Shown: positions 5,921 to 62,790 of the stretch, piece after piece
How positions within the stretch are numbered: the first letter of the stretch is position 1
Layout of the letters: each line of letters opens with the position of its first letter
From: Macrostomum lignano
Lineage: Eukaryota
Assembly (NCBI GenBank): GCA_002269645.1
Contig: NIVC01001008.1
Coordinates: 1 to 64,000 of the forward strand
Reading direction: 5' to 3'
DNA length: 64,000 bases
Made by a program: the position numbers and the translations under genes
The notes under the pieces: generated by a model
What the model saw: the letters and a program-made list of their open reading frames with translations, nothing else
Database searches by the model: none
What the model was told of the DNA's origin: nothing

Positions 5921-7376
<1,456 letters not shown>

Positions 7377-39761: not shown

Positions 39762-42700
39762 TCATTTTTTGATCTCGCTTGGAGCATTGGCAGAGTCTGG
39801 CTGGTAGCCGGAGTTGTTGAAGTACTCGTAGTTGTACGGAGGCGGCTGCGGCTCCAACGGCTGCTGCTGCGGCACCGAGCTCGGGTTTGAGACTTGAGGA
39901 GGAGGCGGCTGTATCGAATTCGGGTAGGCGGCTGGAGCCTGCATCGGATTCGGGTAGGCGGCTGGAGCCTGCATCGGATTCGGGTAGGCGGCTGGAGCCT
40001 GCATCGGGTACGAGCCCGGAGGCGGTGGCGGATTGGCCGCGGACGCAACGGCAGCAACGGGCAATCCGCCCGCCATTTGGTTTCGGCGGGCCATCAGTCT
40101 GGAAGTTCGTTGTCGATAGATTCGATAGCCTAGAATGGAGCCGCCCACGACAAAGATTAAGGCTAGGAAAGCTGGCCAGTAGCGCCTAAAAATCAGCGTC
40201 ATTTCAGAGGGATTGGCCTCGGACCACTCTTTGATGTAGAATGATAGTCTATTTGGATTGTAAAACTTGTTGGCCGGTGTGCCGCCTTTTGGAGCGGAGC
40301 ACAGCTGGGCAAAGTTCGAGTAGCAGTCGGCTCGATATAGCGAGCCGGTCTGGTAAAAAACGCACGGACAGTCGCTTGTTCCTGAGCAGTACGATGGAGT
40401 CTTCGGCACGTCGTACAGCCTGTGGTGGGGTTGGTGCGATTTGCTCTGTAACTGATTTCTTTTTATTTATAGCGAGTTGTCTTAGTGACAAGCTGAGAAA
40501 ATTCGTAAGAAATAGCAAAGTGCATGGGCTTTCGGACTAAGCACACGATCAATAAAAAATTAAAGCTTTAGTTTCGGAAAAAAATTTAGAAGTGCCCCGA
40601 GACAGCTTATTTTGGAGATTGTAGCAGTGGTTCGAGCGTCGGACTCACGACTGAAAGGTCGGGGGTTCGATTCTCGTCCCAGTTGGAACAATTTGTGTCC
40701 TTGAGCAAGATCCTTAACTCTGTATTGCTTCAGTTCACCAAGCTGTAAAATGAGTGCCAGCATTAGCTGGGGTAATTGAGGGTGTATGTGGCGACCCCCC
40801 AGTCCTTGGACTGAACAGCCGTACGCAGCCTTCAGATGTGCCGTGCAATAGCTGCGGCTGAGCTGTCGGTTGCACATCTGGCCATTAGGGCCGCGCAGGA
40901 AATCGAACCGCAGTCCGCGGGGGTCGCGACACGAGAGTCGGGCGCGTTTACCGATAAGCTGCCCTACCCCGCTTTTTTACCCTCTGGTAAATAAACCAGA
41001 TAACACCACAAGATAACATTCGCTCAAACAAGATAACATGCCCCATTCCGGTTATGCAAAATGTTATCTTGTATGAATCCTGTTTGCGTGACGAAATCTT
41101 ACGTTTCCTTGTTTCAAACAAGATTAAAATAGGATTCATTGACCAGGTAACAGTCGGGTAATTCATGCGAATCCTGCAGGGAAACATCGTGTTATCCTGT
41201 TTGTTATCTTGTTTGTTATCCTGTCTGGCAAACAGGATTCGCTGACCAGGTAACAGTCGGGTAATTCATGCGAAAAAATCCGGAAGGCATTGACATCAAA
41301 TTTCGCAGCAAAGAAGCGTATAAAAAGTTGGTGCTTCAAGATTTTATGAGTAGCATCTATTTAACAGCGGGGTGTCATTTGTAAGCGCCTTATACAAACT
41401 AAACGTAGCTCAACAGGAACGAAAACTTCTGGAGAACAGCGTGGCATACGTCTGAGTTGCGGGAGTCCAGTTATAAGTAGACCTACTACTTATACTGTGG
41501 ATACCAATTGATATGTAGTGTGAGCATCTTTGCGTATATTTTGTTGTAAATTGACTGCATTAGTTTCTATATTGTTATTGAATTGTTATTTTGCTTTAGT
41601 TTAGTCATGCGTTTTTTGTGTACTTTTTCTAGTTGGTTGAAATCTAAAATTGTAAACAGGTTAGAGTTAGACGCCATCTGTGACTCAGCGGAGGGTTGAG
41701 TTTTGTCTGCGAACCCCAGCTTTGCGCGGTCAGCCAATCAGAACCGGCCTGGACCCTGGCACGCGGCAAGTTTCAATTCTACCCGGCGCCGCGGGCACAG
41801 TGCAATTCGGCTTAAGCGAGCGGCCGGCCAGACGACCACCACCCGGCTTGAGGGGGTTTTGCGAGGGTTTGACTCTGACTATATATGAAAGTGTGTTTTG
41901 GCAATCGGATCTCGCTTCTCTCTCCTTTCCCCGGTTTTGTCTTGTCCAGTTCCCGGCCGGTGGCCCGACTTTTCCTCCCCTTGTTGGTTCGCGCTTTGAG
42001 GCGTTTTGATTTCATCACCCCCGGTCCATATCTTTGTTCCCGCCCAACCGCAGTAGTCTTGTGGCGTAACGTCTACGGCAAATTCCTGTCTGAAGTCGTC
42101 GCTATCAAGCGCGGTTAGATAGAGACTGTCGGATCTGATCAAGTACGCGGCCTCGACCCCGAGGGCCCCAGTGTTACACTGAAGGGCAGTGCCGATAGAA
42201 CTTAGTCGGTACTCCGTTGAACGGTCGGTTCGGCAGGGCTCTCGTTTGAGAGTAGGTTCTGGCTTAGGCCAGGGGTTAGGAGTCTTCTCCGTGGTCCTGT
42301 GTTCGGTGCCTTTTTCTTCTTCAAGCTAAGATCCGCTTGTCAGTGCGTATATAATCATTATTTATTAACCGTTATTGTCGTTTTGTCAACTCTAGTTATC
42401 TGCGTCGTTTGTCTAAATCTTGTAACTCAGCTAATCAAATTAAACCGTCAATCAAGTTAGTTATTCTGAAATAGGATTATCACTCTCTAAATCTTTCGGT
42501 TTGTGTTCCCTCGTGTTCTTTATTTTCTTGTACTGTACCTGCGGCTATTGGAGAAAGACTGGTAGGACTCGCCGACCGGCGATAGGCGATTAGGATTAAT
42601 AGCTTTAAAATCTCCAAACGCTCCAAGTAGGTTTGTCTAGGGCCTAAATAATTGCTTACCGTGCATGCTATTATCTAATTGCCTATTTATCACAGATACT

Positions 42701-45700
42701 ACTGAATTGGTGATCTGCTGCGAGCTGGTGCTGAGTCGCAGGTCGGACCTGCTGTACTCGGACGCGACTCTGATGGCAGTTGACGCGTGAGCCCGACGTT
42801 TGAAAGATCGGGTCGCGCGCACGGAAGGCGATTAATGAGACCACTGACGGGGGCTTGCATTATATGCCGGCGCAATGGAACGACTCTGCATTATTAAAGT
42901 TAAATTAAATGGCGATGGAAGGCAGTTTCTCCAAAATATACACAGTTATAAAGAAACAGTAATGTACATACACACTCGATCGTCTAGCTCTAACAGACAG
43001 CGACGGTTCGCCGACAATCATTGCCAGATTGTACGACTGTTCACTAGTAATGTCAGCTGCGTCGATAGAATTGTCATTCGTAGCATAGTCGTCATCCGGA
43101 ATCAACTGGCTTTCGTTGATCGGCTGCTCGTAGACCGGAGACAAAGTGAATGGTGTATCATCTGATGCGCCGGCTCGCGCGGCGCTGGATTCGTTGCGTC
43201 CACGAAATGCCGACTACGCTGGAAACTCTTACATGATTGTCTTCGCAATCCTGTTTGCCAGCGGTAATATCCAACCGACTTGACGTTGCAGATGTCGCTA
43301 GTGCGATGGACGATCGTCCAACGGCGTCATCAACTGCGTCGTTCGAAGCAGTGACACCCTCCGAAAAAAGTGGCTGACAAGATTACCGACACTCGTAGTC
43401 TGTAACGACTACTCTTTTGACTTGTTCGAGGATTTATTAAATCTCGACAAGATTACCGACACTCGTAGTCTGTAACGAATACTCTTTTGACTTGTTCGAG
43501 GATTTATTAAATCTCGACAAGATTACCGACACTCGTAGTCTGTAACGACTACTATCTTCACTTGATCTGCTTACGGCTGGTGCAACTGCAAACGCCTTAG
43601 ACAAACCAATGGAGCATGCACCGAAAAAAAATCGGATTAGCGTCTATCTTAATAGGAAAGCTGCTTTGAATACTGGGCCAGTTAGAGCTATTTGGAACCA
43701 TGCCACAGTCTCCGTCTAGACACCCAGCTGTGCCAAACAATATGGTTGGCTGACTCATGCTTCTAAGCGTCAAATATGACGATAGAATCATTCAGCCCGT
43801 TGACACACTAAGCAGCTGTGATAGACTACATGCCAGTGGTAGTCAAACCTCTCGCACACAATCAGGGCGCAACAATTTTTCAATTGTCACCTGTACGGAG
43901 GATGGGCACAGCCTCACATTACGGACGCTACAGTGCCTCCGAAAAGCAGATCAATTCTCCTTGCGATTTCAAGGCTTTATTACCCCTCGGATTAAAGATT
44001 GACCCGCGTAGTCAAATAAAAGTGACTACACTTAGCAGCTGCCTTGAGCCACAACAGACGCGAGGATTGATTACCCCTCGTAGGTCAGCATTTTCAGTCA
44101 ACTGCTCAACTCTGATTCATCGGTTGAAGCGGGGTTCCATTATCCCTCACTGGTGGCCATACACCAACACTGCAGACGCTTTAGACAACCCAATGGAGCA
44201 TGCTCTAGCAAGAGCTAGAATAACGTCTGTCTTAAAAAAGGTTACCTTAGAACTGGGCCAGTAGGAGCTTTTGGAACCATGCCACAGCTCCATCTAGACA
44301 CCCAGCTGCACCAGATAATAGGGTAAACTGATATACTAAGTAACCGCGACAGACTACATGCCATTGGGAGTCAAACCTCTCCAGCACAATAAGAATGCAA
44401 TAGTTTGTCTGAGAGCCAACAAAGCTATCACCTGCAGGGAGGGTGGGCACGGCCTCACATTACGAGCGCTAGCGTTTGCTGATATATGACACTTTACCCC
44501 TCGCAGGTCAGCTTAGCAGCTGCCTTGAGCCACAACAGAAGCGAGGATTGATTATCCATCGCAGGTCAGCTTAGGAGCTGCCTTGAGCCACAACAGAAGC
44601 GAGGATTGATTATCCATCGCAGGTCAGCTTAGGAGCTGCCTTGAGCCACAACAGAAGCGAGGATTGATTATCCATCGCAGGTCAGCTTAGGAGCTGCCTT
44701 GAGCCACAACAGAAGCGAGGATTGATTATCCATCGCAGGTCAGCATAGCAGCTGCCTTAAGCCACAACAGACGGAAGACCAGTCTTATCCGTAACTTCAT
44801 TGAGATTTCGGTCAATGGGAGCTGATCCCTGTGGATTTTCCGGATCACTTGGTCTAGATCGCTGAGGAATTCCGACTGAACTCCCAAAATCTCATCCAGA
44901 AAATTTTCATTTGGAAAACTTGAAATTTAGGTCTGCAATCAGAATTCAGCAGCTGTTCCAGGTTAAAAATTTCGGAAAATCCAGCCGGAACAGCTTTTCC
45001 TTTTTCCCGAACTTTTGCAGGATCACATTTTCGGGAAAAGAGGGGCTATTCCGGGCCAAAAATTCTGATCCAAGCCTTCACTTGGAAATCAATTAATACA
45101 TCAGGCCCAGATCACGAAATTCTGGAAAAAAATTCTGGGTGAAAAGTACAATGGGTTCTTACAGACCGGATAACACAAAGGCATCTTGATTGAAATCTTA
45201 TTCCATTATCTGCTTTGCAAACCAGATTCGCATCATGTTATCCGACAAATTTCAGATTCACACAGGTTTCATACAAACCAGATAACACATAGTTATCTTG
45301 ATTAAAATCTTGTACTGTTATCTGTTTTTCAAACAAGATTCGCGCCATGTTATCCTGTGAAATTCCGATTCAAACAAGATTCGATCAACCAAGATAACAG
45401 AGAATTATCTGGTGGCGAATCTTGTACTGTTATCTGTTTTTCAAACACGCACTATGTTATCTTGTGAAATTCAGATAACTCACCAGATAACAGTCAAACA
45501 AGAAAACAAAAAATTATCTGATGGCGAATCTTGTCATGTAATCTGATTTCTAAGCAAGATTCGGGCCATGTTATCTGGTGAAATTCAGATAACTCACCAG
45601 ATAACACTAAAATTACCTTTTCACCTCAAACAAGTAAATCGGTAGTGAATCTGACAAGATTCGCAAATTATCTTGTGGTGTTATCTGGTTTATTTACCAG

Positions 45701-46550
45701 AGGGATAGGAAGGCTTCAGTGCGATTGCCTACTAAACCTAATGTACATGCAACTTATGAGTAATCGCAAACTTCAGATCGATCTTAACTTAGGCCGGTTT
45801 TTAAGTGCTCTTAGTGAGCCGCCACCTGCAAGATCAATCGGACACTCACGACATGTGGAAGGGCTCGCCAGTGAGGAAGTACAACTTAGGATTCTTGCCA
45901 CGGTACTTCATAACGCCGACCCAGTAGGGCCTGCTATCGGCAACCAGAGCCTCCAGGGTGCCTGTGCTTGTAAAGTCGATGGCGAGGTTCGCCTGCAGCA
46001 TGCGGCACAGCTCAAACGCCTGGTCGAAGGTGACCAAATCGTTCTTTGCCGGGTTTCCGTAGCAGACGGAGCCGCTGCTGCGCCATCCGTACGGGCAGTC
46101 GCCGCTAAAGATTGGCGCCACGGACAGCAGCACCGAAGACTCCATCGAAGGCGGAGCATCGGAGACCAGACGAGCCTCGAACCAGCTGCCGGACCCAACA
46201 ATAAGATGCCGACAGCCAACTGTTGACGTAGAAAAATTTTTCACCTTTAAAATCTGCGAATGGGTGGCGTTCCTGATGGTTAGCGAGTTCGATTCGTACA
46301 GCTGAAGGCTGTCAATAGCGACTGAGAAGCCGGTGCTGCTGCGGGCGGCGCTGAAGTTCAATGCGTGAACGAAGCTGGAGCAGCCGCTTGTGACATTGAC
46401 AGTCAGCTGGGCTGATGTGTGAGAGGAGATTCTCAGCTGTTGATAGCTCTGGCAGTGGCCAGCAACCGCCGTGGCAACGATGCTGAGCGCCGTTGCCAGT
46501 AGCAACGGGAACGCGACCGGTGAAAATCGAGGATTCTGAAATGCGGCCAT
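39762..46550 (-). CDS. CUB-like + C-type-lectin-like single-pass receptor with PPxY tail, copy 1 (452 aa)
   Basis: Exons 46550-45850 (donor TC|GTGAGT) and 40419-39762 (acceptor CCACCACAG|G), phase 2. Signal peptide; CTLD marks CPYGW..CY, C, YWVG, C.CV..C..C; TM; tail with (QAPAAYPNPM)-like repeats x3 and PPPY. Confidence 0.85.
40621..40890 (+). mobile_element. tRNA-derived CORE-like SINE
   Basis: Same family as 19004-19316; B box GGTTCGATTC. Confidence 0.85.
40891..40972 (-). mobile_element. tRNA-like head fragment of a second SINE type
   Basis: Minus strand GCGGGGTAGGGCAGCTTATCGGTAAA..GGTTCGATTTCC has A/B-box-like motifs but no convincing cloverleaf. Confidence 0.45.
41651..42600 (+). mobile_element. 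Possible solo LTR or other non-coding TE segment
   Basis: Starts TGTA, contains a TATATA and an ATTAAA, has no long ORF; no TSD or terminal CA identified. Confidence 0.25.
43376..43552. repeat. 70-bp tandem repeat, about 2.6 copies
   Basis: Units at 43376, 43446 and 43516. Confidence 0.9.
44503..44771. repeat. 58-bp tandem repeat, about 4.6 copies
   Basis: Units at 44503, 44561, 44619, 44677 and 44735. Confidence 0.9.
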
Positions 46551-46620
46551 TTCTAAGTGTATAAATTTAATGCTAACTCGAATCTATTTGAATAAACAGG
46601 AAATATAGTATACTGCTACT

Positions 46621-46762
46621 GCCTGATGGCTTAGTCGTTAGAGCGTCGGACTCAAGACTGAAAGGTCGGGGATTCGATTCTTGACTACTCACTCGGAACA
46701 ATTTGTGTCCTTGAGCAAGAAAGTTAACTCTGCATTGCTTCAGTTCATCCAGCTGTAAAATG
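46621..46762 (+). mobile_element. 3'-truncated CORE-like SINE
   Basis: Head and core homologous to 40621-40750. Confidence 0.8.
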
Positions 46763-47445
46763 CTAGCAAAGGGGTAAAATGTCAGACTGATTTAATAGTA
46801 TTTTGGTTAACTAACTTATTTAAGACTATATATAAATAATAGACGTACTCCACGTAGTCAATAGCCTAATAATGAAAAATTATTGCAACAAAAACTTCTT
46901 TTAATGGAGAAAAAATCGATTCATATTGAATTTTATTGCCTCGGAATGCTTAGTGTTCAGGTTATAAACTGTTGCAGATAAACGCATCCGTAAAAAATAT
47001 TTTTGGGTTATAAATGACTAGAAAAAACATATTGGGTTGCAAGCCACGAACCAGTGTTGAATAATAAAGTTAAGATTTACCACACAGATTTTTAAGGCAA
47101 ATGAGCCTTAAAAATAAAACTGATAGGTTATAAAAAGCAATACCAATTAGGCGCTCATACAGTCCTATAAAATACGATCTTTGAAGTCAATAGCTTCTTC
47201 GGATAAAACGGCTGGTTGTTGCAAAAAAGCGGCATTTTTAAGCTGGTGCAGGCGAGTGAAAAACGCATAAGCCAAACTAGAAATCTAAAAAGTAACCATG
47301 CAAGGTGCTGAAAATTTGAATAGGAAAATATGATTTATTGTGTATTGATCAGAATAAGAGCTCAGTTGCTTGTAAATAGAAACTTATCATATGTTATTTA
47401 TGACACAAAATTATGAAAAATATAGATTTTCATATTCATGAGATT

Positions 47446-49098
47446 GGTCACTCCTGATCCGCCCTACGAGAATCACTCCTGATCCGCCCTACTAGAATTA
47501 ATCCTGATCCGCCCTACGAGAATCACTCCTGATCCGCCCTACGAGAATCACTCCTGATCCGCCCTACGAGAATCACTCGTGATCCACCCTATGAGAATCA
47601 CTCCCTGATCCACTCTATGAGAATCACTCGTGATCCACCCTATGAGAATCACTCCTGATCCACTCTATGAGAATCACTCCTGATCCACCCTATGAGAATC
47701 ACTCCTGATCCACTCTATGAGAATCACTCCTGATCCACTCTATGAGAATCACTCCTGATCCACCCTATGAGAATCACTCCTGATCCACTCTATGAGAATC
47801 ACTCCTGATCCACTCTATGAGAATCACTCCTGATCCACTCTATGAGAATCACTCCTGATCCACCCTATGAGAATCACTCCCTGATCCACTCTATGAGAAT
47901 CACTCCTAATCCGCACATGAGAATCACTCCCTGATCCGCACAATGAGAATCACTCCTGATCCGCCCTACGAGAATCACTCCTGATCCGCACATGAGAATC
48001 ACTCCTGATCCGCACATGAGAATCACTCCTGATCCGCACCATGAGAATCACTCCTGATCCGCACATGAGAATCACTCCTGATCCGCACATGAGAATCACT
48101 CCTGATCCGCACAATGAGAATCACTCCTGATCCGCACATGAGAATCACTCCTGATCCGCACAATGAGAATCACTCCTGATCCGCACAATGAGAATCACTC
48201 CTGATCTACCCTATGAGAATCACTCCTGATCCGCACAATGAGAATCACTCCTGATCCGCCCTACGAGAATCACTCCTGATCCGCCCTACGAGAATCACTC
48301 CTGATCCGCACCATGAGAATCACTCCTGATCCGCACAATGAGAATCACTCCTGATCCGCCCTACGAGAATCACTCCTGATCCGAAGATGAGAATCACTCC
48401 TGATCCGCACAATGAGAATCACTCCTGATCCACCCTACGAGAATCACTCCTGATCCGCACATGAGAATCACTCCTGATCCGCACATGAGAATCACTCCTG
48501 ATCCGCACCATGAGAATCACTCCTGATCCGCACATGAGAATCACTCCTGATCCGCACAATGAGAATCACTCCTGATCCGCACAATGAGAATCACTCCTGA
48601 TCCACCCTATGAGAATCACTTCTAATTCGCACATGAGAATCACTCCTGATCTACCCTATGAGAATCACTCCTGATCCACCCTATGAGAATCACTTCTAAT
48701 CCGCACATGAGAATCACTCCTGATCCACCCTATAAGAATCACTCCTGATCCGCACATGAGAATCACTCCTGATCCGCACCATGAGAATCACTCCTGATCC
48801 GCACATGAGAATCACTCCTGATCCGCACAATGAGAATCACTCCTGATCCGCACCATGAGAATCACTCCTGATCCGCACAATGAGAATCACTCCTGATCCG
48901 CCCTACGAGAATCACTCCTGATCCGCACAATGAGAATCACTCCGGATCCGCCCTACGAGAATCACTCCTGATCCGCACATGAGAATCACTCCTGATCCGC
49001 ACAATGAGAATCACTCCTAATCCGCACATGAGAATCACTCCCTGATCCACCCTATGAGAATCACTCCTGATCCGCACAATGAGAATTACTCCTAATCC
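47446..49098. repeat. 24-25-bp minisatellite, 1.65 kb, between copies 1 and 2
   Basis: GAGAATCACTCCTGATCC + GCCCTAC/ACCCTAT/GCACAAT variants. Confidence 0.95.
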
Positions 49099-49319
49099 GT
49101 CGGTGAGAATTGTTTTGTCCACAATGGCCTGTTCTTTTTCACAAAGCTCCACCTTGTTTCGAAGCTGAAACAACTAAATAAAAAAGAATGATAAACCAAA
49201 TACCAGATAAACATCAACAGAGGTAAATTATAGAAACAGCCATCACGGCAACAATTGTAAAGCGCTCCAATTCCGATAAAACGGTTCTGACTATTAACAT
49301 TCTCGTATGTCGATGAGTT

Positions 49320-52300
49320 TCACTTCTTGTTGTCGCTCGGTTCAGCGTCACCAGCAGCCGCCGAGTCAGGCTGGTAGCCGGAGTTGTTGAAGTAGCTGTA
49401 CGGAGGCGGCTGAGGCTCCGGCGCCTGCGGCTGTGGCGGCACGGAGTTCGGGTAGGAGACTGGAGGAGGCGGCGGCTGCATCGGGTACGAGCCCGAAGGC
49501 GGAGGTGGTGGCGAAGTAGCCTGCGTCGGATACGAGCCCGGAGGCGGCGGCGGATTGACTGCGACGGTCGACACGCCGACAGGCATCTGACGCCGGCGCT
49601 CCATCATTCGAACGGCGCGCATTCGAAAAAATACGCGAAAACCGATGGCCGAGCCGGCCACCACAAGGCCGAAAACGAAGAAAGCCGGCCAGAAGCTGCT
49701 GAACCGAAGTATCCATGCGGTTGGGTTGTCGCTCGTCCGCTGTCCGATATAGACTGAGATTAGCTGGGGATTGTAATACTTGGCCGGTTGGCCGACTTTT
49801 GGAGCGGAGCACAGCTGGGCAAAGCGGGAGTCGCAGCTGGCTCGATAAAACGAGCCGCTGCGGTAGAAGACGCATTCGCAGCTGCTGGACCACGAGCAGT
49901 ACGATGATGACTTCGATACCTTGGACAGCCTGTGGTGGGGTTTGGTGCGATCTCCCAGTTTGAATGTGACTATTACAGTTGCACTGATTCATATGGTGAG
50001 CTTACATGTATGCCTGTTTGCACTAAAATACAGATGGCTAAAATAACAAATCTTTGCAGGAACGGCTGTGGGCTTCCTGGCGCAATGGGCGCCCATTCAA
50101 TTGAATCCTGGGTACATATGAGCGTAATAGCAGCAATTAGTAACATTGGTAGCTTGCTATCTGGGGGGGGGGGGGGGCAGCTATCTAGGGATTCTTCTAT
50201 CCAGGGATGCTTGCTGTCTGAGGGACGCTTTCTATCTAGGGATTCTTCTATCCAGGGATGCTTGCTGTCTGAGGGATGCTTTCTATCTAGGGATTCTTTC
50301 TATCCAGGGATGCTTGCCGTCTGAGGGACGCTTTCTATCTAGGGATTCTTTCTATCCAGGGATGCTTGCTTATTTATGGATGCTTGCTGTCTGGGGGACG
50401 CTTTCTATCTAGGGATTCTATCTATCCAGGGATGCTTGCCGTCTGAGGGACGCTTTCTATCTAGGGATTCTATTTATCCAGGGATGCTTGCCGTCTGAGG
50501 GACGCTTTCTATCTAGGGATTCTTTCTATCCAGGGATGCTTGCTGTCTGAGGGACGCTTTCTATCTAGGGATTCTATCTATCCAGGGATGCTTGCCGTCT
50601 GAGGGACGCTTTCTATCTAGGGATTCTATCTATCCAGGGATGCTTGCCGTCTGAGGGACGCTTTCTATCTAGGGATTCTATCTATCCAGGGATGCTTGCC
50701 GTCTGAGGGACGCTTTCTATCTAGGGATTCGTTCTATCCAGGGATGCTTGCCGTCTGAGGGACGCTTTCTATCTAGGGATTCTTTCTATCCAGGGATGCT
50801 TGCTGTCTGAGGGACGCTTTCTATCTAGGGATTCTTTCTATCCAGGGATGCTTGCTGTCTGAGGGACGCTTTCTATCTAGGGATTCTTTCTATCCAGGGA
50901 TGCTTGCTGTCTGAGGGACGCTTTCTATCTAGGGATTCTATCTATCCAGGGATGCTTGCTGTCTGAGGGACGCTTTCTATCTAGGGATTCTTTCTATCCA
51001 GGGATGCTTGCTGTCTAAGGGACGCTTTCTATCTAGGGATTCTTTCTATCCAGGGATGCTTGCTGTCTAAGGGACGCTTTCTATGTAGGGATTCTTTCTA
51101 TCCAGGGATGCTTGCCGTCTGAGGGACGCTTTCTATCTAGGGATTCTTTCTATCCAGGGATGCTTGCTGTCTGAGGGACGCTTTCTATCTAGGGATTCTT
51201 GCTTTCTGGGGGTGTTTGCTATTTGGGAGGAATGCCTGCTATCTTTGCAAAGGCTTTATTTTGTTGTTTCGTTTTGTTGCTTTTAGAAAAAAAGAGATTC
51301 ATAGCAAACAACTTTGTCCGGGACAATTTTACTCCAATAAGGCGTTTTTTAAAACTGAAAACTGAAGGACTTGGTTCTTAAGAATGCTGTGTGCTCAGGA
51401 GTTTTGGAACGATGGCGCCGAATAGGCCTGTTGGCAACAGGGTGCCCGCAGACCTCCTTCAATAGCTCAGCTTCTCATCCTCTTTACCATTTCATCTTAG
51501 TCTGATTCTATCTCTGTCATGTCCTACGAGTATTTAAGGTATGCACATTAATAAGCACTACGAGCGTATATAAATTGGACTCCACACACATAAAAGACTT
51601 CCCTGTACCCGGCCATTTAAAACAATAACAGATCGAGACATTTGATGTAGTTTCCGTCACAGGGAAGCAGTGGCATATAAAGAAACGAAACTTCTACTTA
51701 TGTTTGACAGAGGTGGCTGGAGAGAAAAAAACACCTACGGCATATAGAAGGACTCGCCATTGAGAAAGTACAACTTGGTATTTTTGGAGCTGTACTCCAT
51801 GACGCCGACCCAGTAGGGCCTGCTGTCGGCAACCAGAGCCTCCAGGGTGCCTGTGCTTGTAAAGTCGATGGCGAGGTTCGCCTGCAGCATGCGGCACAGC
51901 TCAAACGCCTGGTCGAAGGTGACCAAATCGTTCTTTGCCGGGTTTCCGTAGCAGACGGAGCCGCTGCTGCGCCATCCGTACGGGCAGTCGCCGCTAAAGA
52001 TTGGCGCCACGGACAGCAGCGCCGAAGACTCCATCGAAGGCGGAGCATCGGAGACCAGACGAGCCTCGAACCAGCTGCCGGATCCAACAATAAGATGCCG
52101 ACAGCCAACTGTTGACGTAGAAAAATTTGTCACCTTCAAAATCTGCGAATGGGTGGCGTTCCTGATGGTTAGCGAGTTCGATCCGTACAGCTGAAGGCTG
52201 TCAATAGCGACTGAGAAGCCGGTGCTGCTGCGGGCGGCGCTGAAGTTCAATGCGTGAACGAAGCTGGAGCAGCCGCTTGTGGCATTGACAGTCAGCTGGG

Positions 52301-52442
52301 CTGATGTGTGAGAGGAGATTCTCAGCTGTTGATAGCTCTGGCAGCCGGTGGCAGTCGCCGTGGCAACGATGCTGAGCGCCGTTGCCAGTAGCAACGGGAA
52401 CGCGACCGGCCCGAGTAAAGAGGGTGACAGAAAATGAAGCAT
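49320..52442 (-). CDS. CUB-like + CTLD single-pass PPxY receptor, copy 2 (437 aa)
   Basis: Exons 52442-51739 (CC|GTAGGT) and 49929-49320 (CCACCACAG|G), phase 2; the join is in frame, giving ..YCSWSSSCECVFYRSGSFYRASCDSRFAQLC, a TM and a tail with PPPY. Confidence 0.85.
50171..51200. repeat. 51-52-bp minisatellite in copy 2 intron
   Basis: CTATCTAGGGATTCTTTCTATCCAGGGATGCTTGCTGTCTGAGGGACGCTTT, about 20 copies. Confidence 0.95.
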
Positions 52443-53049
52443 TGAAAGCAAATGAAAATATAAAAACCGAATTCATTGATTATTGGGCAGCCATATATCT
52501 AAGCTATGCCGAGACACATCTACTCTCGATCACCTAACTGTATCCCTGACGAAGCAAAGTCGGAAGGCATAAAAAATTATCAAAATTAACTGTCACAAAT
52601 ATATTTGGCTTCACACAGTGTTAGACGCAAATAGTTTTGAGAAATAGAAAAACAAACCATAAATATTGTTTGAAAAAATTTGTCAGGTAGAAAGATTTGA
52701 TTAAACAAAAATACGCTTACACAATAAGTGCGGTGAAAATGGCAATTTAATATCACAGTTTGCGGAAGAATTCGCTGTACGTGTGTAAATGTTTTTTAAA
52801 AATTAATTTTTTTTATAAAAATGCCTGCTATCTATATATACTACTGGCCAGGCTATCTAACATATTTAAAGAGAAATAAGGCATTTTCGCACAAAAGTAG
52901 AAAAAATACGTTGCATAAAAGGCTGTTAGACACACTCTAAATAGGACCGTTAATATGAGGCAATACGTGCGTTGCAAAAAAATCTTTTTTTTCAGCGTAT
53001 AAAGTAAAAGTTCATAATATTTCATTGTTATACAATTATTTCAAAAAAA

Positions 53050-53636
53050 CCTTCGGACTACAAGACTGACCACTTCGGACACTGCAAGACTGACCCCTTC
53101 GGACACTACAAGACTGACCCCTTCGGACACTACAAGACTGACCATTTCGGACACTACAAGACTGACCATTTCGGACACTACAAGACTGACCATTTCGGAC
53201 ACTGCAAGACTGACATATTCTGACACTACAAGACTGACCCATTCGGACACTACAAGACTGATCCATTCGGACACTACAAGACTGATCCATTCGGACACTA
53301 CAAGACTGATCCATTCGGACACTACAAGACTGACCCATTCGGACACTACAAGACTGATCTATTCGGACACTACAAGACTGATCCATTCGGACACTACAAG
53401 ACTGATCCATTCGGACACTACAAGACTGACCCCTTCGGACACTACAAGACTGACCCCTTCGGACACTACAAGACTGACCATTTCGGACACTACAAGACTG
53501 ACCATTTCGGACACTACAAGACTGACCCCTTCGGACACTACAAGACTGACCATTTCGGACACTACAAGACTGACCATTTCGGACACTACAAGACTGACCC
53601 CTTCGGACACTACAAGACTGACCATTTCGGACACCC
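53050..53636. repeat. 24-bp minisatellite
   Basis: TTCGGACACTACAAGACTGACCAT, about 24 copies. Confidence 0.95.
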
Positions 53637-53751
53637 GACACTGACCTTTTCAGGCATTCAGAATAACAATAATTTTAAGAACACAGCCAATCACATCTAA
53701 ACCGCAGAAAGCCATCCAAAGATCGATGAGCACTCAACAACCGACCAAATT

Positions 53752-55812
53752 CTAAGCTTTGTCGTAGGCTGGCGGTGGATCCGAAGGCATCCTGTTGTAG
53801 GCGGGCGGTTTCGGCTCCATAGAAACGGCGCCCGGCTCGTTAGCGCCAATGCCAGGGCTGTAGGCGCCGAGGCCGTAGGATCCGGCTGGCTGGGTCGGAT
53901 AGCTGCCGGGCGGCGCCGTGCAATGCGAGTTGGCTGGCGCCGGCGCCACCGGCTGAGCGGCGCCGTCAGCGGTCATGGCGTAGTTGGCGGCAACAGGGGC
54001 ACCAGACCGGGAATTGGCAACGGCTCGGCGGTACCAGAGGTATCGAATGCCAAAGCCGATCCCAGTTAAAGCGGCTGCAACAGCCAGCCCAATAATCCAG
54101 TAGTAGTTGAACGTGAAGCTGGCATCGCCGATTCCCAGGCTTTTGTCCAGCGTGCTCAAATTGTAGAATTTCGCATCCCCGCCGGGCCGGCTGCTGCACA
54201 GGTAGCGCAGCATCTGAGCGCAATAATTCCGATAGAACGAGCCCGCGCTAAAGTACACACAGCGGCAGTTCCCGCCAAAGCAGGTGTACGTACTCGAACC
54301 CTTGAACGTTATGGAGCTGCTGGATCTGAAATTATTGGGTTTGCAGGATGGTGTGAGCTGCAATATGGAAGATTATTCGCTGCGGGCCACCCTGGTGCAA
54401 CGCCTTCCTTCGGAGACATCGTCTTATCAGCCAGCGCTGACGGCGATTCTGCCCGTTCCGCTGACTCCTGAGCACAAAACAAGCGCACCAATACTGAACG
54501 CAGCCACGCACTCACACACGCGCTTCCACAGGGTGTACAATAGCCCTGACTTCCCAATCGTCAGGCATGAACACTCTCTGTGCCTTGGGGATTGAACCTC
54601 ATGACTGTGAATCGTATTTTCACGCACAAGCACTTGCAACACAAAACGCCCAGTAGACGTCACTAAACTCCGGATAAAAACCTGCTGGTTTGTAGCACAG
54701 AAGCTGAAGCAACCCATCCATTGTAGAAGCTGTCACTATCCAGGAAAAACAGAAGCTGAAGCAACCCACCCATTGTAGAAGCTGTCACTATCCAGGAAAA
54801 ACAGAAGCTGAAGCAACCCACCCATAGTAGAAGCTGTCACTATCCAGGAAAAACAGAAGCTGAAGCAACCCACCCATAGTAGAAGCTGTCACTATCCAGG
54901 AAAAACAGAAGCTGAAGCAACCCACCCATAGTAGAAGCTGTCACTATCCAGGAAAAACAGAAGCTGAAGCAACCCACCCATAGTAGAAGCTGTCACTATC
55001 CAGGAAAAACAGAAGCTGAAGCAACCCACCCATAGTAGAAGCTGTCACTATCCAGGAAAAACAGAAGCTGAAGCAACCCACCCATAGTAGAAGCTGTCAC
55101 TATCCAGGAAAAACACGCCTTTGGAGGTGTCGGCCACACCAACCCAGGTATCTTGACCTGTCGGCCAGGTCGTCGTGCTGGCCAGACCCAGTACGTCGGC
55201 TGTTGAAGAGACAAAGCCCAGCGCCAAATTGGCGCGCACGTAACGGCAACCAACGGCAGCGTTGGTGAAAGTGGCCCGCGAGTTATTTGGATGCGCGGCG
55301 CCGTAGCAGAGACCGTCTCTGTACAACCAGCCAGCCGGACAGGCGCCAGTCTTGACCAGTTCAACGTCCAGCACGATGCTGTCGGGGTAATAAGAAAACG
55401 AAGAAGATAACGCACGGGTGAAAAGCTTAACGTAAAATTTGTTGCTAGGGGTGGCAAATGCCCGATAGTCAGTTTGATTATCCGTGGTAACCAAGGCCAA
55501 CGGAGCCGAGCCGAACTCGGGCCCGATGCTGAATACGGACAAGCGTTTAGACAGGCTGCTGCTGAGGCGCACGTAAAAGTACATCCCGCCGACGCCGTGG
55601 AACTCGGCGTGGCAATAGCTAATGTTGACCAGGTTCAGCTCCACGCTAAATCTGGTGGTGCCGTTGTAGGCTGAAGAGTTGATGCTCACTATGGCCGGTC
55701 TGCCTGTTCTGTGGGTGCAGCCGTAGCGGTCAACAGCCTGGCTGAGCAATGGAACGGCTAGGAGCAGCGAGGACAAAACAAAAATAAGAAACTGCAGCTG
55801 CCGGTGACACAT
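53752..55812 (-). CDS. CUB-like + CTLD single-pass PPxY receptor, copy 3 (434 aa)
   Basis: Exons 55812-55082 (GG|GTGGGT) and 54325-53752 (AATTTCAG|A), phase 2. CPAGW..CYG, WVGV, CRCVY..C..YLC, TM, PPAY x2. Confidence 0.83.
54505..54613 (-). mobile_element. Short SINE-like dispersed repeat; second copy at 55870-55982
   Basis: Shared CAATCGTCAGGCATG..ACTCTCTGTGCCTTGG..TTGAACCTCATGACTG; the minus strand has a B-box-like GGTTCAA. Confidence 0.55.
54698..55113. repeat. 52-bp x8 tandem repeat made of the copy 3 exon-1 end plus its splice donor
   Basis: Units every 52 nt from 54698; the minus-strand unit is GTTTTTCCTGGATAGTGACAGCTTCTACTATGG|GTGGGTTGCTTCAGCTTCT. Confidence 0.93.
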
Positions 55813-56241
55813 CGCGCTGTTCAGGCATGCATCGAATGAGTTGGTTGGCTTGGGGTTTCAGAAATCCATCACACACTCAAACACACGCTCACACAGGGTG
55901 CACACAGTGGCCCGGACTTTCTAATCGTCAGGCATGTGCACTCTCTGTGCCTTGGAGGTTGAACCTCATGACTGGGAATCCCACAATCCTATATATCCTA
56001 GTATCAGCAAAGTATAAAAATAGCAAATAGACAAGTTGTAATGCAAAAGCATTAAGTTATTTTTCCCATTTTATTGATAGACGATAAATATGCCTTTGTA
56101 GAAATGATATTCAGGATATCAGCAGTGCAGGCTCTCATCAAAATGCTATTGAGAAAAAAAGCAAAGCGATTGACGAGGCCTAATTATTAAAATTTAACGG
56201 ATTGTATAAAGCATATAAACTGTGTCATGTGAGAAGGTGCA

Positions 56242-57186
56242 AACAGGTGAGAGGATATAACAGGTGAGAGGATAGAACAGGTGAGAGGATATAACAGGTG
56301 AGAGGATAGAACAGGTGAGAGGATAGAACAGGTGAGATGATAGAACAGGTGAGAGGATAGAACAGGTGAGATGATAGAACAGGTGAGATGATAGGATAGG
56401 TGAGATGATAGAACAGGTGAGATGATAGAACAGGTGAGATGATAGAACAGGTGAGATGATAGGACAGGTGAGATGATAGGATAGGTGAGATGATAGGATA
56501 GGTGAGATGATAGAACAGGTGAGATGATAGAACAGGTGAGATGGTAGAACAGGTGAGAGGGTAGAACAGGTGAGATGATAGAACAGGTGAGATGGTAGAA
56601 CAGGTGAGATGATAGGATAGGTGAGATGATAGAACAGGTGAGATGATAGAACAGGTGAGATGGTAGAACAGGTGAGAGGGTAGAACAGGTGAGATGATAG
56701 AACAGGTGAGATGGTAGAACAGGTGAGAGGGTAGAACAGGTGAGATGGTAGAACAGGTGAGAGGGTAGAACAGGTGAGAGGATATAACAGGTGAGAGGAT
56801 ATAACAGGTGAGATGATAGAACAGGTGAGATGGTAGAACAGGTGAGATGATAGAACAGGTGAGATGGTAGAACAGGTGAGAGGGTAGAACAGGTGAGATG
56901 ATAGAACAGGTGAGATGGTAGAACAGGTGAGAGGGTAGAACAGGTGAGATGATAGAACAGGTGAGATGATAGGACAGGTGAGAGGGTAGGACAGGTGAGA
57001 GGGTAGATCAGGTGAGAGGGTAGAACAGATGAGATGATAGGACAGGTGAGAGGGTAGGACAGGTGAGAGGGTAGAACAGATGAGATGATAGGACAGGTGA
57101 GAGGGTAGAACAGATGAGATGATAGGACAGGTGAGATGGTAGAACAGATGAGATGATAGGACAGATGAGATGATAGAATAGGTGAG
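56242..57186. repeat. 17-bp purine-rich minisatellite
   Basis: ACAGGTGAGATGATAGA and variants, about 55 copies. Confidence 0.95.
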
Positions 57187-57744
57187 ATGCAGGAGTGAGA
57201 GAAATACCCGGGCTACGTAATAAGAGAGAACCAGAGGTCACTGCATAAAAATTATACAAATCAACAATTAATATGAAAAAACTGCAAATATTTTTGTAGA
57301 CGAAAATAAAAACAAGAATGGCGGCTAACTAAGATATAAAAGGCACAAGACAAAGGGTTAAGATTTTTGTTTGCCAGAAAAATACACAATGGAATACTTA
57401 AAACATTTGATCAAGTTCAGTTAAATATAAAAGCTACTTCCAGATCGAAGACAGCAGAGAAAGTTGACACGGGTGTTAATGCTATGAAGCAATAAATCAT
57501 AGCAGAGCTGTTGGCTATCTACTGTCTTAAGAATGAGCATTGAGGGATTAAAAATAAATAGAAAAATAAAGATTTCGTATTTGATTAGGGAAAATATAAC
57601 AATGCAATGCTTGATAATCTACACGTGTCCAGCCTCATGGACTGATTAGTTACAGCATGTTAATCTACCATCTACCTAACTTTATCGACTTGCTTTGTTG
57701 TATTATACACGTCGTACCTATCAATATCATCTAGCCTCTTTTTC

Positions 57745-58665
57745 TGTCTACCAATCTGTCTACCGATCTATCAATCTGTCTACCTGTCTGTCTAACTAGC
57801 TGTCTACCTGTCTACCAACCTGTCTACTTATCTGTCTACCTATCTGTCTACTAATATGTCTACCAATATGTCTACCTACATGTCTACCTGTCTACTAATC
57901 TGTCTACCTGTCTACTAATCTGTCTACCTAACTGTCTACCAATCTGTCTACCTACCTGTCTACCTGTCTACTTATCGGTCTACCTATCTGTCTACCTATC
58001 TGTCTACCTGTCTACTTATCGGTCTACTTATCTGTCTAACTATCTACCAATCTCCTATCTACCAATCTCCTATCTACCAATCTCCTATCTACCAATCTTC
58101 TATCTACCAATCTTCTATCTATCTCCTATCTACCAATCTCCTATCTACCAATCTCCTATCTACCAATCTTCTATCTATCTCCTATCTACCAATCTCCTAT
58201 CTACCAATCTTCTATCTATCTCCTATCTACCAATCTCCTATCTACCAATCTCCTATCTACCAATCTTCTATCTATCTCCTATCTACCAATCTCCTATCTA
58301 CCAATCTCCTATCTACCAATCTTCTATCTATCTCCTATCTACCAATCTCCTATCTACCAATCTTCTATCTATCTCCTATCTACCAATCTCCTATCTACCA
58401 ATCTCCTATCTACCAATCTCCTATCTACCAATCTCCTATCTACCAATCTCCTATCTACCAATCTTCTATCTACCAATCTCCTATCTACCAATCTCCTATC
58501 TACCAATCTTCTATCTATCTCCTATCTACCAATCTCCTATCTACCAATCTCCTATCTACCAATCTTCTATCTATCTCCTATCTACCAATCTCCTATCTAC
58601 CAATCTCCTATCTACCAATCTCCTATCTACCAATCTCCTATCTACCAATCTTCTATCTACCAACT
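57745..58665. repeat. Degenerate TCTACC repeats grading into an 11/15-bp minisatellite
   Basis: CTATCTACCAATCTC units at 58030-58665. Confidence 0.92.
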
Positions 58666-60961: not shown

Positions 60962-61748
60962 CAACTGGGTCTGTAGCTGGGTCTGCAACTGGGTCTGCAA
61001 CTGGGTCTGCAATTCTGGGTCTGCAATTCTGGGTCTGCAACTGGGTCTGCAACTAGGTCTGCAACTGGGTCTGTAGCTGGGTCTGCAACTGGGTCTGCAA
61101 GTGGGTCTGCAACTGGGTCTGTAGCTGGGTCTGCAACTGGGTCTGCAACTGGGTCTGTAGCTGGGTCTGCAACTGGGTCTGTAGCTGGGTCTGCAACTGG
61201 GTCTGCAACTGGGTCTGTAGCTGGGTCTGCAACTGGGACTGCAACTGGGTCTGTAGCTGGGTCTGTAGCTGGGTCTGCAACTGGGTCTGCAATTCTGGGT
61301 CTGCAATTCTGGGTCTGCAATTCTGGGTCTGTAGCTGGGTCTGCAATTCTGGGTCTGCAACTGGGTCTGCAACTGGGTCTGTAGCTGGGTCTGCAACTGG
61401 GACTGCAACTGGGTCTGCAACTGGGTCTGTAGCTGGGTCTGCAACTGGGTCTGCAACTGGGTCTGCAACTGGGTCTGCAACTGTGTCTGCAACTGGGTCT
61501 GCAACTGGGTCTGTAGCTGGGTCTGTAGCTGGGTCTGCAACTGGGTCTGCAATTCTGGGTCTGCAATTCTGGGTCTGCAATTCTGGGTCTGTAGCTGGGT
61601 CTGCAATTCTGGGTCTGCAACTGGGTCTGCAACTGGGTCTGTAGCTGGGTCTGCAACTGGGACTGCAACTGGGTCTGCAACTGGGTCTGTAGCTGGGTCT
61701 GCAACTGGGACTGCAACTGGGTCTGCAACTGGGTCTGCAACTGGGTCT
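60962..61748. repeat. 12-14-bp minisatellite
   Basis: CTGGGTCTGCAA / CTGGGTCTGTAG / TTCTGGGTCTGCAA. Confidence 0.95.
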
Positions 61749-62230
61749 TTGCTCCCTGGTTTAAATATGAAACAAAGCTGCACTGAAAAAAATCACAGCG
61801 TTATATTTTTTATCACAAAATATGAGCTAAGAAAGGAGTTTTTAAATGAAGACGGTAAATGATAGTGGATACATAAATTGTATAATAGTTTACAGACACA
61901 AAATGGTGTAAGATTCCTGGATAAATGTTCAGATGCAGTGGATATATAGGATAAAATTTACTATAATAATGTGCACCAATAATCGTTAATTAATTTTTTC
62001 CCATCTTAAACAACAGCGTAAAAGTTAAAATTAATCAAAAAATAGTTTACGAATATTCAGTTTGCTGTTTCTTGGAAAAATTTCCGACAAAATAGTAATG
62101 CAAATAAGCCACATTATCAGCAACAACATACCTGACATTAGGAGGACATTATAAAAAACCACTTGCATGTACAAAAAGCAATACAAAAGCAAAGGATATT
62201 GTGCCTTTTATCTGCTTTCGGGTGTACGTA

Positions 62231-62648: not shown

Positions 62649-62790
62649 GTCTTCCTCATGGAGATCAAGCTTCATCGCTTTTTAGTTTGCATCAAAGAAT
62701 TAGACAAATATGAATTGTGAGTCCTGTCAATGATTGTTGTGAATTTTTACACTCATTCAGTTAAACGGGTTCATACTTCAAAAGTGCCGC

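Follow-up and report, generated by a model that had tools for sequence, protein, structure and literature searches.

Two adjacent genes of the flatworm Macrostomum lignano, called here c1 and c2, are almost identical over most of their first exon and strongly diverged elsewhere. The change occurs within the sequence coding for a divergent C-type lectin-like domain (CTLD), close to its long loop. Which process keeps one part of these genes alike, and what sets its limits? A preliminary description of the locus proposed that gene conversion homogenizes a shared scaffold and leaves variable binding regions protected, as in some immune-receptor families.

Organization of the locus

The window analysed comprises 64,000 nucleotides, positions 1 to 64,000 of contig NIVC01001008.1 (C1008) in the M. 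lignano assembly Mlig_3_7 (GCA_002269645.1). Genes c1 and c2 form a head-to-tail tandem pair of paralogues on the minus strand, 5.9 kb apart. Exon 1 of c1 (45850-46550), delimited from its open reading frame and splice sites, codes for the signal peptide, followed by an N-terminal beta-rich domain and, as far as the long loop, the first half of the CTLD. Its donor GTGAGT (45849-45844) is in phase 2 and yields a junction that agrees with NCBI models P0012 and P0001. Exon 2 (39762-40419, matching P0012) codes for the remaining long loop, CTLD strands beta3-beta5, a stalk, a transmembrane (TM) segment and a Pro-rich PPPY tail ending at the stop codon. The c2 exons, at 51739-52442 (donor GTAGGT) and 49320-49929 (preceded by the acceptor ...CCACCACAG/G), match P0002. 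The exon junctions first read from the DNA thus agree with the NCBI gene models. Two distant paralogues lie on the same strand: c3, with exon 1 at 55075-55812, exon 2 at ~53755-54300 and a protein ~30% identical to c1, and c4, with exon 1 at 60140-60844, exon 2 at ~58850-59254 and ~32-40% identity.

The c1/c2 family is an uncharacterized, lineage-restricted group of type-I membrane proteins with a signal peptide, an N-terminal beta-rich domain, a divergent CTLD, a TM segment and a Pro-rich tail with a PPxY motif. It is confined to Macrostomum, with only 10 detectable relatives. The additional N-terminal domain of ~120 amino acids has no Pfam match. Inspection of the translations by eye showed uncharged TM segments in both proteins, Pro-rich tails with PPPY and GSYP motifs, and no ITIM-like motif in either tail.

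The entire gene cluster is present on three contigs, C1008, C350 and C125, which correspond to the three known subgenomes and provide six copies of c1/c2. This number is explained by the M. lignano genome, whose three subgenomes have an SNP divergence of 1.9-2.4% (PMC10733133). Scaffold chimerism affects 36% of the assembly length (PMC10733133), and contig-to-contig relationships shift along the locus, showing that homeologue recombination or scaffold chimerism does occur. The c1 intron of C1008 has ~5 kb of extra sequence (40738-45706) exclusive to this contig, which is minisatellite-rich and lacks a transposase-like ORF; the same intron is ~0.8 kb long on C350 and C125.

The homogenized core and its borders

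Ungapped comparison of the two first exons, at an offset of 5889, gives 6 differences in 519 nt between 45937-46455 and 51826-52344, four replacement (V/A, K/T, E/G and V/A) and two silent, exactly as initially reported. They lie at window positions 46132, 46194, 46240, 46248, 46294 and 46393. The further stretch of about 50 identical signal-peptide nucleotides is also found, measuring 54 nt (46467-46520). Between the two, a minus-strand patch at the predicted signal-peptide end (46456-46466) has 7 clustered differences, coding for AVAGH versus ATATG. At the exon-1 3' end (45842-45936) 18 of 95 positions differ (81% identity), and past 46520 and under 45842 identity drops to the random level of 23-27%. 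Blastn with word size 7 detects just two homologous c1/c2 blocks on each of the three contigs, an exon-1 block of 679 nt with 95.4-97.2% identity and a gapped exon-2 block with 67-70%; the 5' flank and the intron give no match. Introns and flanks, described at first as largely unrelated, are indeed not alignable, and the ~65% identity given for the first 55 amino acids of exon 2 corresponds to 36/55.

The homogenized core spans 584 nt on the minus strand, at 45937-46520 in c1 (nt 31-614 of its coding sequence) and at 51826-52409 in c2, as defined by its lack of fixed paralogue differences, its shared polymorphisms, silent divergence and phylogeny (see below). It has 13 differences in 584 nt versus 209 in the 706 nt of the remaining coding sequence, a contrast far beyond chance (Fisher p = 1.7e-45).

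The 5' border of the core is knife-sharp: the first 10 codons of c1 (46521-46550) cannot be aligned to the 11 opening codons of c2 (52410-52442), and synonymous divergence (dS) is saturated there. The 3' border is graded and varies among contigs. In C1008 a c1 segment coding for KYRGKNP (45888-45912, minus strand) carries 8 substitutions in a 25-nt span that are private to this copy; all five other copies read EYSSK(N/S)T, and no other donor was found in the 764-Mb assembly. This patch most likely represents ancestral c1 sequence that escaped conversion. The preliminary description placed the fall of identity right after YWVGVM, which is correct for C1008 because of the KYRGKNP patch. It does not apply to C350 and C125, where c1 has EYSSKNTKLYFL as c2 does and the tract extends 8-12 codons further, reaching about 12 residues into the loop. 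For coding-sequence nt 639-663 on these two contigs the transfer probably went from c2 to c1, among the six copies compared, all from M. lignano. All 6 fixed paralogue differences of exon 1 fall in the final 27 nt of the c1 exon (45850-45876; TGEPFHMS versus NGESFYMP), even though homology of ~80% extends as far as the exon end.

Evidence for repeated gene conversion

Between the paralogues, dS drops ~30-60-fold in the core, to 0.01-0.02. It amounts to 0.29-0.60 at the exon-1 3' end and to 0.55-0.69 in the ectodomain part of exon 2, and reaches 0.77-0.92 over the TM segment and tail. This collapse of silent-site divergence, to 0.01-0.02 against 0.55-0.92 elsewhere, is incompatible with exon 1 having been kept alike, in the absence of exchange, by very strong purifying selection or nucleotide-level constraint. 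As constraint would predict, the stretch of exon 1 that codes for the CTLD (nt 451-614) is nearly invariant, the six copies varying at 1 of its 164 nt, but variation in the core is mostly replacement (nonsynonymous to synonymous ratio, N:S, 23:5; dN/dS about 1), and constraint cannot produce shared polymorphisms or tree incongruence. Synonymous sites and shared polymorphisms together effectively refute constraint as the sole explanation, and its probability is negligible.

The six core copies have no fixed paralogue difference and 12 shared polymorphisms, with a minimum of five recombination events (Rmin = 5) in 584 nt. Haplotypes of the signal-peptide-end patch cross paralogues: c1 of C1008 equals c2 of C350, and the other four copies are of the second type. 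The same two sequences, different paralogues on different contigs, form a clade in the core tree (support 99/98), and for the core an AU test rejects monophyly of the paralogues (p = 0.0015); the exon-2 tree recovers the two paralogue clades with support 100/100. A GENECONV-type analysis, carried out as a Sawyer-type permutation with our own implementation on 250 polymorphic sites, was significant both globally (p <= 2e-4) and per pair (p from 2e-4 to 0.02). Low core dS, shared polymorphisms, Rmin, the cross-paralogue clade and the rejected monophyly therefore strongly support repeated interlocus gene conversion between c1 and c2 exon 1, the process originally suggested.

Two other features bear on this conclusion. 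Older diverged sequence is found on both sides of the tract in all three contigs, unalignable in the 5' flank, first 10 codons and intron and 67-70% identical in exon 2, which identifies the tract as a patch and not as a young whole-gene duplicate or the outcome of a single crossover. Divergence among subgenome copies amounts to 1.0-4.1% in c1/c2 exon 1 versus 0-1.4% in neighbouring paralogues, as expected if conversion imports variants. Raised GC3 is common, not obligatory, in converted tracts. No sign of GC-biased conversion was detected in the core, whose GC3 is 0.72 compared to 0.63-0.83 in the other gene parts and 0.68-0.76 in unconverted paralogues.

Part of the pattern would also result from a single replacement of exon 1, by conversion or patch repair, before subgenome separation, if the copies afterwards only diverged in the ordinary way and recombined between homeologues, and the paralogues no longer exchanged sequence. 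One event already yields a low dS and a sharp 5' edge, and the shifting contig relationships attest that homeologue recombination or scaffold chimerism takes place. Homeologous exchange alone is, however, unable to carry variants between c1 and c2. It leaves unexplained the 12 sites with the same two alleles in both paralogues, their at least 5 incompatible patterns, the contig-dependent 3' end and the well-supported clade uniting c1 of C1008 with c2 of C350. Such a history is unlikely. Some variants common to both paralogues could be older than subgenome isolation.

It is very improbable that consensus bleed-through during assembly or polishing made or inflated the identity and the shared variants. 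The same pattern emerged independently in the assembly of three contigs whose flanks are unique, and the tract edges are inside the exon instead of at exon boundaries, although the homogenized block is exonic. Mlig_3_7 was polished by Pilon with Illumina genomic and RNA-seq reads, short sequences that six near-identical exon copies invite to mis-map, and single SNPs among these copies could be distorted. Polishing cannot turn ~25-30% divergence into 2%, and a majority vote would remove mosaic shared polymorphisms, not make them. Furthermore, UniRef proteins that presumably derive from the older ML2 assembly match all three c1 haplotypes, including the KYRGKNP patch (P0016), and the c2 sequence of C350 is matched by P0003; ML2 and Mlig_3_7 were built on the same PacBio data and are thus not fully independent.

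The CTLD and its long loop

Both c1 and c2 score 20.5 bits with Pfam Lectin_C (PF00059; E = 8e-4), under the gathering cut-off of 22.6, with coverage of profile positions 3-106 of 107. The family relative P0005 passes the cut-off at 23.5 bits. A weak phmmer match to CLEC-2 (3WSR_A; query residues 12-138, E = 0.038) puts the CPxGW, CY, alpha1-Cys, WVG, beta3 Cys and terminal Cys positions in register. Of the Ca2+/carbohydrate-binding motifs, direct reading of the sequences showed no EPN/QPD in the c1/c2 loop and YRAD or YRAS at the WND position. The AlphaFold2 model, computed from a 9-row alignment, is unusable (mean pLDDT 47, and under 50 over residues 151-302, which contain the CTLD); a deep alignment is not possible because the family has only the 10 relatives mentioned above.

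At sequence level the fall of identity does map to the CTLD long-loop region, as the preliminary description held: YWVGV aligns, within the weak CLEC-2 match, with the WIGL strand, the fall-off starts directly past it, and the next ~37 residues appear to correspond to the CLEC-2 long loop. A functional model built on this supposes that selection removes conversion tracts entering this loop, which would keep the binding regions paralogue-specific. Such protection is weakly supported and we consider it doubtful. In its favour, the 6 differences in the last 9 codons of exon 1 are fixed in all three subgenomes in spite of ~80% homology up to the exon end. The exon-2 ectodomain is also conserved among subgenomes in each paralogue (N:S 6:6, pairwise dN/dS roughly 0.15-0.3), which implies that c1 and c2 each have a functional, distinct half of their own. 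Against it, the tract end is not fixed, since the sequence shared on C350 and C125 passes into the loop, and divergence is not loop-confined but goes on through the beta3-beta5 core strands, stalk, TM segment and cytoplasmic tail with equal or higher dS. No sign of diversifying selection was found in the diverged loop and ectodomain, where paralogue dN/dS is 0.23-0.53, under 1. The supposed scaffold is the gene's most replacement-polymorphic part: 27 of the 28 variable core sites are in the homogenized N-terminal domain, and within-paralogue N:S is 33:7 in the core versus 13:14 in exon 2 (p = 0.006). The unrelated intron alone suffices to account for the stop of the tracts, and a "ligand-binding loop" is an assumption in proteins without EPN/QPD and WND motifs.

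A model for the c1/c2 locus

The silent-site contrast, shared polymorphisms, phylogenetic incongruence and haplotype-specific tract ends are direct observations; the recombination mechanism and the role of homology in limiting the tracts are what we infer from them. The probable explanation is an old tandem duplication in which a ~0.58-0.64-kb block of exon 1 was repeatedly overwritten by interlocus conversion, with tract limits set by the end of usable homology. The age of the duplication is deduced from the exon-2 dS of 0.55-0.92 and the unalignable introns and flanks. Non-allelic conversion would overwrite the exon-1 block time and again, making the six copies on three subgenomes a single pool of near-identical mosaic sequences. 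On the 5' side, tracts would stop at codon 10/11, the two genes being unrelated further upstream. On the 3' side they would stop within the final 10-30 codons of exon 1, shortly before a phase-2 intron that is unrelated in the two genes and interrupts the coding sequence of the CTLD long loop. Sequence escaping conversion might gather mismatches and become refractory to more conversion, while exon 2, cut off by 0.8-5.4 kb of heterologous intron, would diverge freely. The model does not fully account for the asymmetry between the 5' and 3' edges.

Comparison with known systems

The c1/c2 pair is a clear-cut example of partial concerted evolution, and an ordinary one: a familiar process acts here in an uncharacterized, lineage-restricted family, with little support for a specially protected binding loop. 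Its proteins share with canonical CTLDs (PF00059; best solved match CLEC-2, PDB 3WSR/2C6U) the long-form cysteine framework (CPxGW...CY, alpha1 Cys, beta3 Cys and the beta4/beta5 Cys pair) and a WIGL-like YWVGV strand. They depart from them in the sub-threshold Pfam score, the lack of EPN/QPD and WND, and the extra N-terminal domain.

Partial interlocus gene conversion between tandem duplicates is classically illustrated by the human fetal globin genes HBG1 and HBG2. Both loci feature an old tandem duplication, a near-identical sub-genic block with sharp boundaries, the true age of the duplicates outside the block, and haplotype-dependent tract ends. Gene family and organism differ, three neopolyploid subgenome copies serve as the haplotype sample for c1/c2, and the c1/c2 boundary has no identified recombination hotspot motif.

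The NK-cell receptor genes KLRC/NKG2, KLRA/Ly49, KLRB and KLRI undergo "merohomogenization" (Fossum et al. 2011, PMC3210942). KLR proteins are type II, whereas the flatworm-specific c1/c2 family is type I. KLR partners have opposite signalling tails, one an ITIM tail and the other going with a charged residue in the TM segment, while c1 and c2 have uncharged TM segments and Pro-rich PPPY tails of the same type. The homogenized part in KLR is the ligand-binding CTLD; in c1/c2 it is the N-terminal non-CTLD domain and the first half of the CTLD, without the long loop and beta3-beta5. The two systems have in common that clustered paralogues coding for CTLD membrane receptors experience conversion in only a part of the gene, and that the remainder, TM segment and cytoplasmic tail included, stays paralogue-specific.

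Organization of the c1 and c2 genes

The tandem genes c1 and c2, both on the minus strand, have two exons each and code for C-type-lectin-like membrane proteins of 452 and 437 amino acids, respectively. Exon 1 of c1 (46550..45850) ends with a GTGAGT donor and is joined to exon 2 (40419..39762). Exon 1 of c2 (52442..51739) ends with a GTAGGT donor and precedes an exon 2 at 49929..49320. The introns are in phase 2, with a ...CCACCACAG acceptor, the splice sites being read directly from the sequence. The junctions are those of the NCBI gene models of c1 (P0012, P0001) and c2 (P0002, P0017), and the best protein matches of the window are M. lignano gene models.

P0001 and P0012 begin at NPRFS, immediately 3' of a consensus TTTCAG acceptor on the minus strand (window 46536-46537, c1 nt 14-15). 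In M. lignano the last three nucleotides of the spliced leader are ATG (PMC8629364). This codon would be in frame with c1 after the acceptor, so the leader may supply the c1 start codon. No AG is found at the equivalent position of c2. The c1 tail (~39850-40000) carries three PMQAPAAYPN units in the contig of the window (C1008) and two in C350 and C125, the two other contigs that carry the cluster. In this repeat region P0012 has AYPNPMQPPPP in place of the longer genomic AYPNPMQAPAAYPNSIQPPPP.

Both proteins are composed of a signal peptide, a beta-rich N-terminal domain of ~120 amino acids that has no Pfam match, a divergent C-type-lectin-like domain (CTLD), one transmembrane segment and a proline-rich tail with PPPY. 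The CTLD matches Pfam Lectin_C with E = 8e-4 and 20.5 bits, just below the 22.6 cut-off. Among solved structures it is closest to CLEC-2 (E = 0.038), with which its cysteine framework and its YWVGV, a WIGL-like motif, align in register. The domain of c1 and c2 lacks the Ca2+/sugar motifs, both EPN/QPD and WND. An AlphaFold2 model of P0002, built from a 9-row alignment of paralogues in the window, reached a pLDDT of 47 and stayed below 50 over the CTLD, which is too low for placing sites. The small size of the family precludes a deep alignment and makes this model unusable; the CTLD was mapped by sequence, using the Pfam hit and a phmmer alignment to CLEC-2.

The family is lineage-restricted: of 1.8 billion representative proteins searched exhaustively with HMMER, 10 were detected as relatives. 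Three word-index searches, in which the proline-rich tail swamps the index, returned M. lignano proteins only. Other members in the window, all on the minus strand and with ~30-40% protein identity, are c3 (exon 1, 55075-55812), c4 (exon 1, 60140-60844), c5 (exon 2, 62794-63402) and a fragment at 38038-38229. Judged from the exon-1 ORFs, the intron position within the CTLD long loop is common to all paralogues. The fragment, an isolated 64-aa ORF downstream of c1 that reads NFYQTALLCHMY...YQPYWVGVV...LYFINGPPFYQT, is similar to exon 1 in the CTLD part alone and probably represents a pseudogene or a truncated member of the family.

Introns and spacers of the cluster are unusually dense in long minisatellite arrays with periods of 12-58 nt (47343-49152, 50093-51346, 52937-53776, 54593-55216, 56089-57500, 57700-58600, 59296-60220, 60969-61800, 62119-62722 and 63566-63965). 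Two 52-nt minisatellites, one in the c2 intron and the other downstream of c3 exon 1, are unrelated (23/52 matches). The c1 intron holds ~5 kb of extra minisatellite-rich sequence on C1008 only (40738-45706), the intron being ~0.8 kb long on C350 and C125; no long TE-like ORF that could code for a transposase was found in this insertion. Copies of a dispersed SINE-like repeat, 84-86% identical, lie upstream of c1 exon 1 (46629-46747) and in the c1 intron adjoining the insertion edge (40626-40737). The tRNA-like stretch near 46640 is part of this repeat, ARAGORN calling no tRNA gene there. Elsewhere the window codes for unrelated housekeeping-type genes (623-2851, 5903-6844 and 22802-24444). 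These comprise glycosyl hydrolase family 38 (alpha-mannosidase-like) exons, a pyridine-nucleotide-disulphide oxidoreductase (sulfide:quinone-reductase-like) and an LCAT-family lipase, and some of their introns have minisatellites that are open in frame.

Three subgenome copies of the cluster

A search of the Mlig_3_7 genome (764 Mb in 5,269 contigs) found the whole cluster, including both c1 and c2, assembled on each of C1008, C350 and C125. This fits the published structure of the assembly, which holds three homeologous subgenomes (S, L1 and L2) with a SNP divergence of 1.9-2.4% (PMC10733133). The ORFs of all six c1 and c2 copies are intact, and the three contigs are thus usable as a small haplotype panel. 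The closest contig pair shifts along the locus, from C1008 and C350 upstream of c1 (0.4%) to C1008 and C125 upstream of c2 (0.8%) and to C350 and C125 upstream of c3 (0.2%). Such changes point to homeologous recombination or to chimeric scaffolds, which account for 36% of the assembly length (PMC10733133).

Probable gene conversion between c1 and c2

The preliminary description had reported a nearly identical exon 1 in the two genes, and its counts were reproduced. A comparison of 45937-46455 with the sequence 5889 nt further on (51826-52344) shows 6 differences in 519 nt (4 replacement, 2 silent). Then come 7 differences clustered at 46456-46466 and, where ~50 further identical nt had been noticed, 54 such nt at 46467-46520. 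The last 95 aligned exon nt (45842-45936) are 81% identical, and outside both ends of the aligned exon identity is at random level. Exon 2 is indeed ~65% identical in its first 55 amino acids (36/55). Introns and flanks, which had been called largely unrelated, show no homology in a sensitive blastn, whose matches between the two genes are confined to 679 nt of exon 1 and to exon 2, at 67-70% identity.

Synonymous divergence (dS, Nei-Gojobori, per region) between c1 and c2 is 0.01-0.02 in the 584-nt core of exon 1 (c1 nt 31-614). It amounts to 0.29-0.60 at the 3' end of the exon, 0.55-0.69 in the exon-2 ectodomain and 0.77-0.92 in the transmembrane segment and tail, and is saturated in the first 10 codons. 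This distribution rules out protein-level constraint as the cause of the exon-1 identity. Among the six copies the core has no fixed paralogue difference, 12 sites with the same two alleles in both paralogues and 16 private sites, while the last 27 nt of exon 1 have 6 fixed differences. The 21 informative exon-1 sites form 128 incompatible pairs (Rmin = 5). In the core tree c1 of C1008 joins c2 of C350 (support 99/98), and grouping the c1 copies together is rejected (delta lnL 20.2, AU p = 0.0015); the exon-2 tree has paralogue clades supported 100/100 and ~0.53 substitutions per site apart. A Sawyer-type permutation runs test on 250 polymorphic sites gave a global p <= 2e-4. Exchange of some kind between the two loci is thus very probable, and the gene conversion proposed in the preliminary description is strongly supported by the dS collapse, the shared polymorphisms, Rmin, the trees and the runs test.

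The subgenome copies of c1 and c2 are 1.0-4.1% apart in exon 1 versus 0-1.4% in that of the neighbouring paralogues, as expected if conversion carries variants between loci. No signature of GC-biased conversion was found in the tract. In exon 2 the proportion of synonymous differences is 0.16-0.27 at alignment codons 256-300 and 406-450 versus 0.5-0.85 around them (roughly 40200-40360 and 39762-39900 in c1, ~20 silent sites per window). These dips may be older small conversion patches or reflect nucleotide-level constraint.

Identity and shared variants could in principle be created or exaggerated by assembly or polishing, a very improbable reading here. Mlig_3_7 is a Canu PacBio assembly polished by Pilon with Illumina and RNA-seq reads (PMC5730564), and the use of short reads calls for caution on single SNPs among six near-identical exon copies. 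Against such an artefact, the pattern was assembled three times, each with unique flanks, its edges fall inside the exon, and a divergence of ~25-30% is not removable by polishing. Moreover, over 300 amino acids the UniRef proteins P0014, P0015 and P0016 depart from the three c1 haplotypes at 0, 1 and 0 positions and have the shared variants and the KYRGKNP patch discussed below, and the protein model P0003 matches c2 of C350. P0014-P0016 presumably derive from the older ML2 assembly; as ML2 and Mlig_3_7 were built on common PacBio data, the two are not fully independent.

Ends of the homogenised tract

The identity drop that had been placed right after YWVGVM is found on C1008. It does not hold for C350 and C125, as it depends on a patch private to c1 of C1008, where 8 substitutions in a 25-nt span (45888-45912) distinguish KYRGKNP from EYSSKNT. 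On the other two contigs c1 reads EYSSKNTKLYFL, identical to c2, and only the last ~9 codons are paralogue-specific (TGEPFHMS versus NGESFYMP). Eight changes in 25 nt are not plausible as point mutations against a 2% background, and a whole-genome DNA search for another donor matched just the six known copies. The simplest reading of these sequences is that C1008 keeps the ancestral c1 patch, the c2-to-c1 tract having presumably extended to nt 663-674 in the lineage of C350 and C125. Tract ends thus vary between haplotypes, and the boundary in a single window is not to be taken as functional.

The 5' edge (nt 30/31) is sharp in all copies and coincides with the onset of unalignable sequence; the 3' edge sits just before the unrelated intron. 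The boundaries would be set mainly by the end of usable homology, and a segment that once escaped conversion would build up mismatches that reinforce its boundary. Gene conversion with such homology-limited ends is a likely account of the complete pattern. Homology does not fully explain the last 27 nt of exon 1, which are distinct although homology of ~80% extends to where the exon stops; weak selection may act against tracts that enter them.

Proposed ligand-binding loop and N-terminal domain

The preliminary description read the pattern as a shared scaffold with a protected variable binding loop. The segment after YWVGV aligns with the long-loop region of CLEC-2, which agrees with a fall-off at the predicted long loop. 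Divergence is not confined to that loop, equal or higher dS continuing across beta3-beta5, the stalk, the transmembrane segment and the tail. A paralogue dN/dS of 0.23-0.53 in the divergent part gives no sign of diversifying selection. Nor is the homogenised block a conserved scaffold. It varies most among copies, 27 of the 28 variable core sites lying in the N-terminal domain (27 sites/420 nt versus 1/164 nt in the CTLD part of the core, p = 0.002), and the part in which the paralogues differ is better conserved within each of them. The protected-loop interpretation is consequently weakly supported and unlikely.

The N-terminal domain rather than the CTLD loop might be the true recognition surface, with conversion shuffling its replacement variants under diversifying selection. 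Variants of six expressed copies from three subgenomes would then be recombined into mosaic receptor alleles, an invertebrate immune-type diversification system if true. Consistent with this are the location of the variable sites, the ratio of replacement to silent variants (N:S) of 23:5 in the core overall, the within-paralogue ratios of 33:7 in the core versus 13:14 in exon 2 (p = 0.006), and a divergence among subgenome copies 2-4 times that of neighbouring paralogues. Relaxed constraint explains the same numbers, dN/dS being about 1 and not significantly above it; for the six copies of the core, N:S is not significantly above the neutral 3:1 (binomial p = 0.26-0.36). This diversification reading is improbable. 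The excess of replacement variants in the N-terminal domain is a lead worth a population sample.

Significance and relation to known systems

Partial concerted evolution is textbook biology and the value of the c1/c2 case is mainly local: it records post-duplication exchange in a neopolyploid flatworm whose three subgenomes provide a built-in haplotype panel. In practice, exon-1 reads, RNAi triggers, in situ probes and CRISPR guides will match all six copies, paralogue-specific targets being confined to exon 2 and to the ~30 nt with which exon 1 ends.

For Macrostomum, a literature search turned up no work on either C-type lectins or gene conversion. As a process, the c1/c2 case is an ordinary one, partial interlocus gene conversion between tandem duplicates. 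Its nearest described counterpart is the "merohomogenization" seen in KLRC, KLRA, KLRB and KLRI, genes for CTLD receptors of NK cells, a concerted evolution restricted to one region of the gene (PMC3210942). Both systems feature clustered CTLD membrane receptors, conversion of part of the gene, and transmembrane segments and tails that are paralogue-specific. KLR partners signal oppositely, while the c1 and c2 tails are both of the same PPxY type, and inspection of the translations by eye found no charged transmembrane residue and no ITIM. The homogenised part also differs: it is the ligand-binding CTLD in the KLRs and the N-terminal domain with half the CTLD in c1 and c2.
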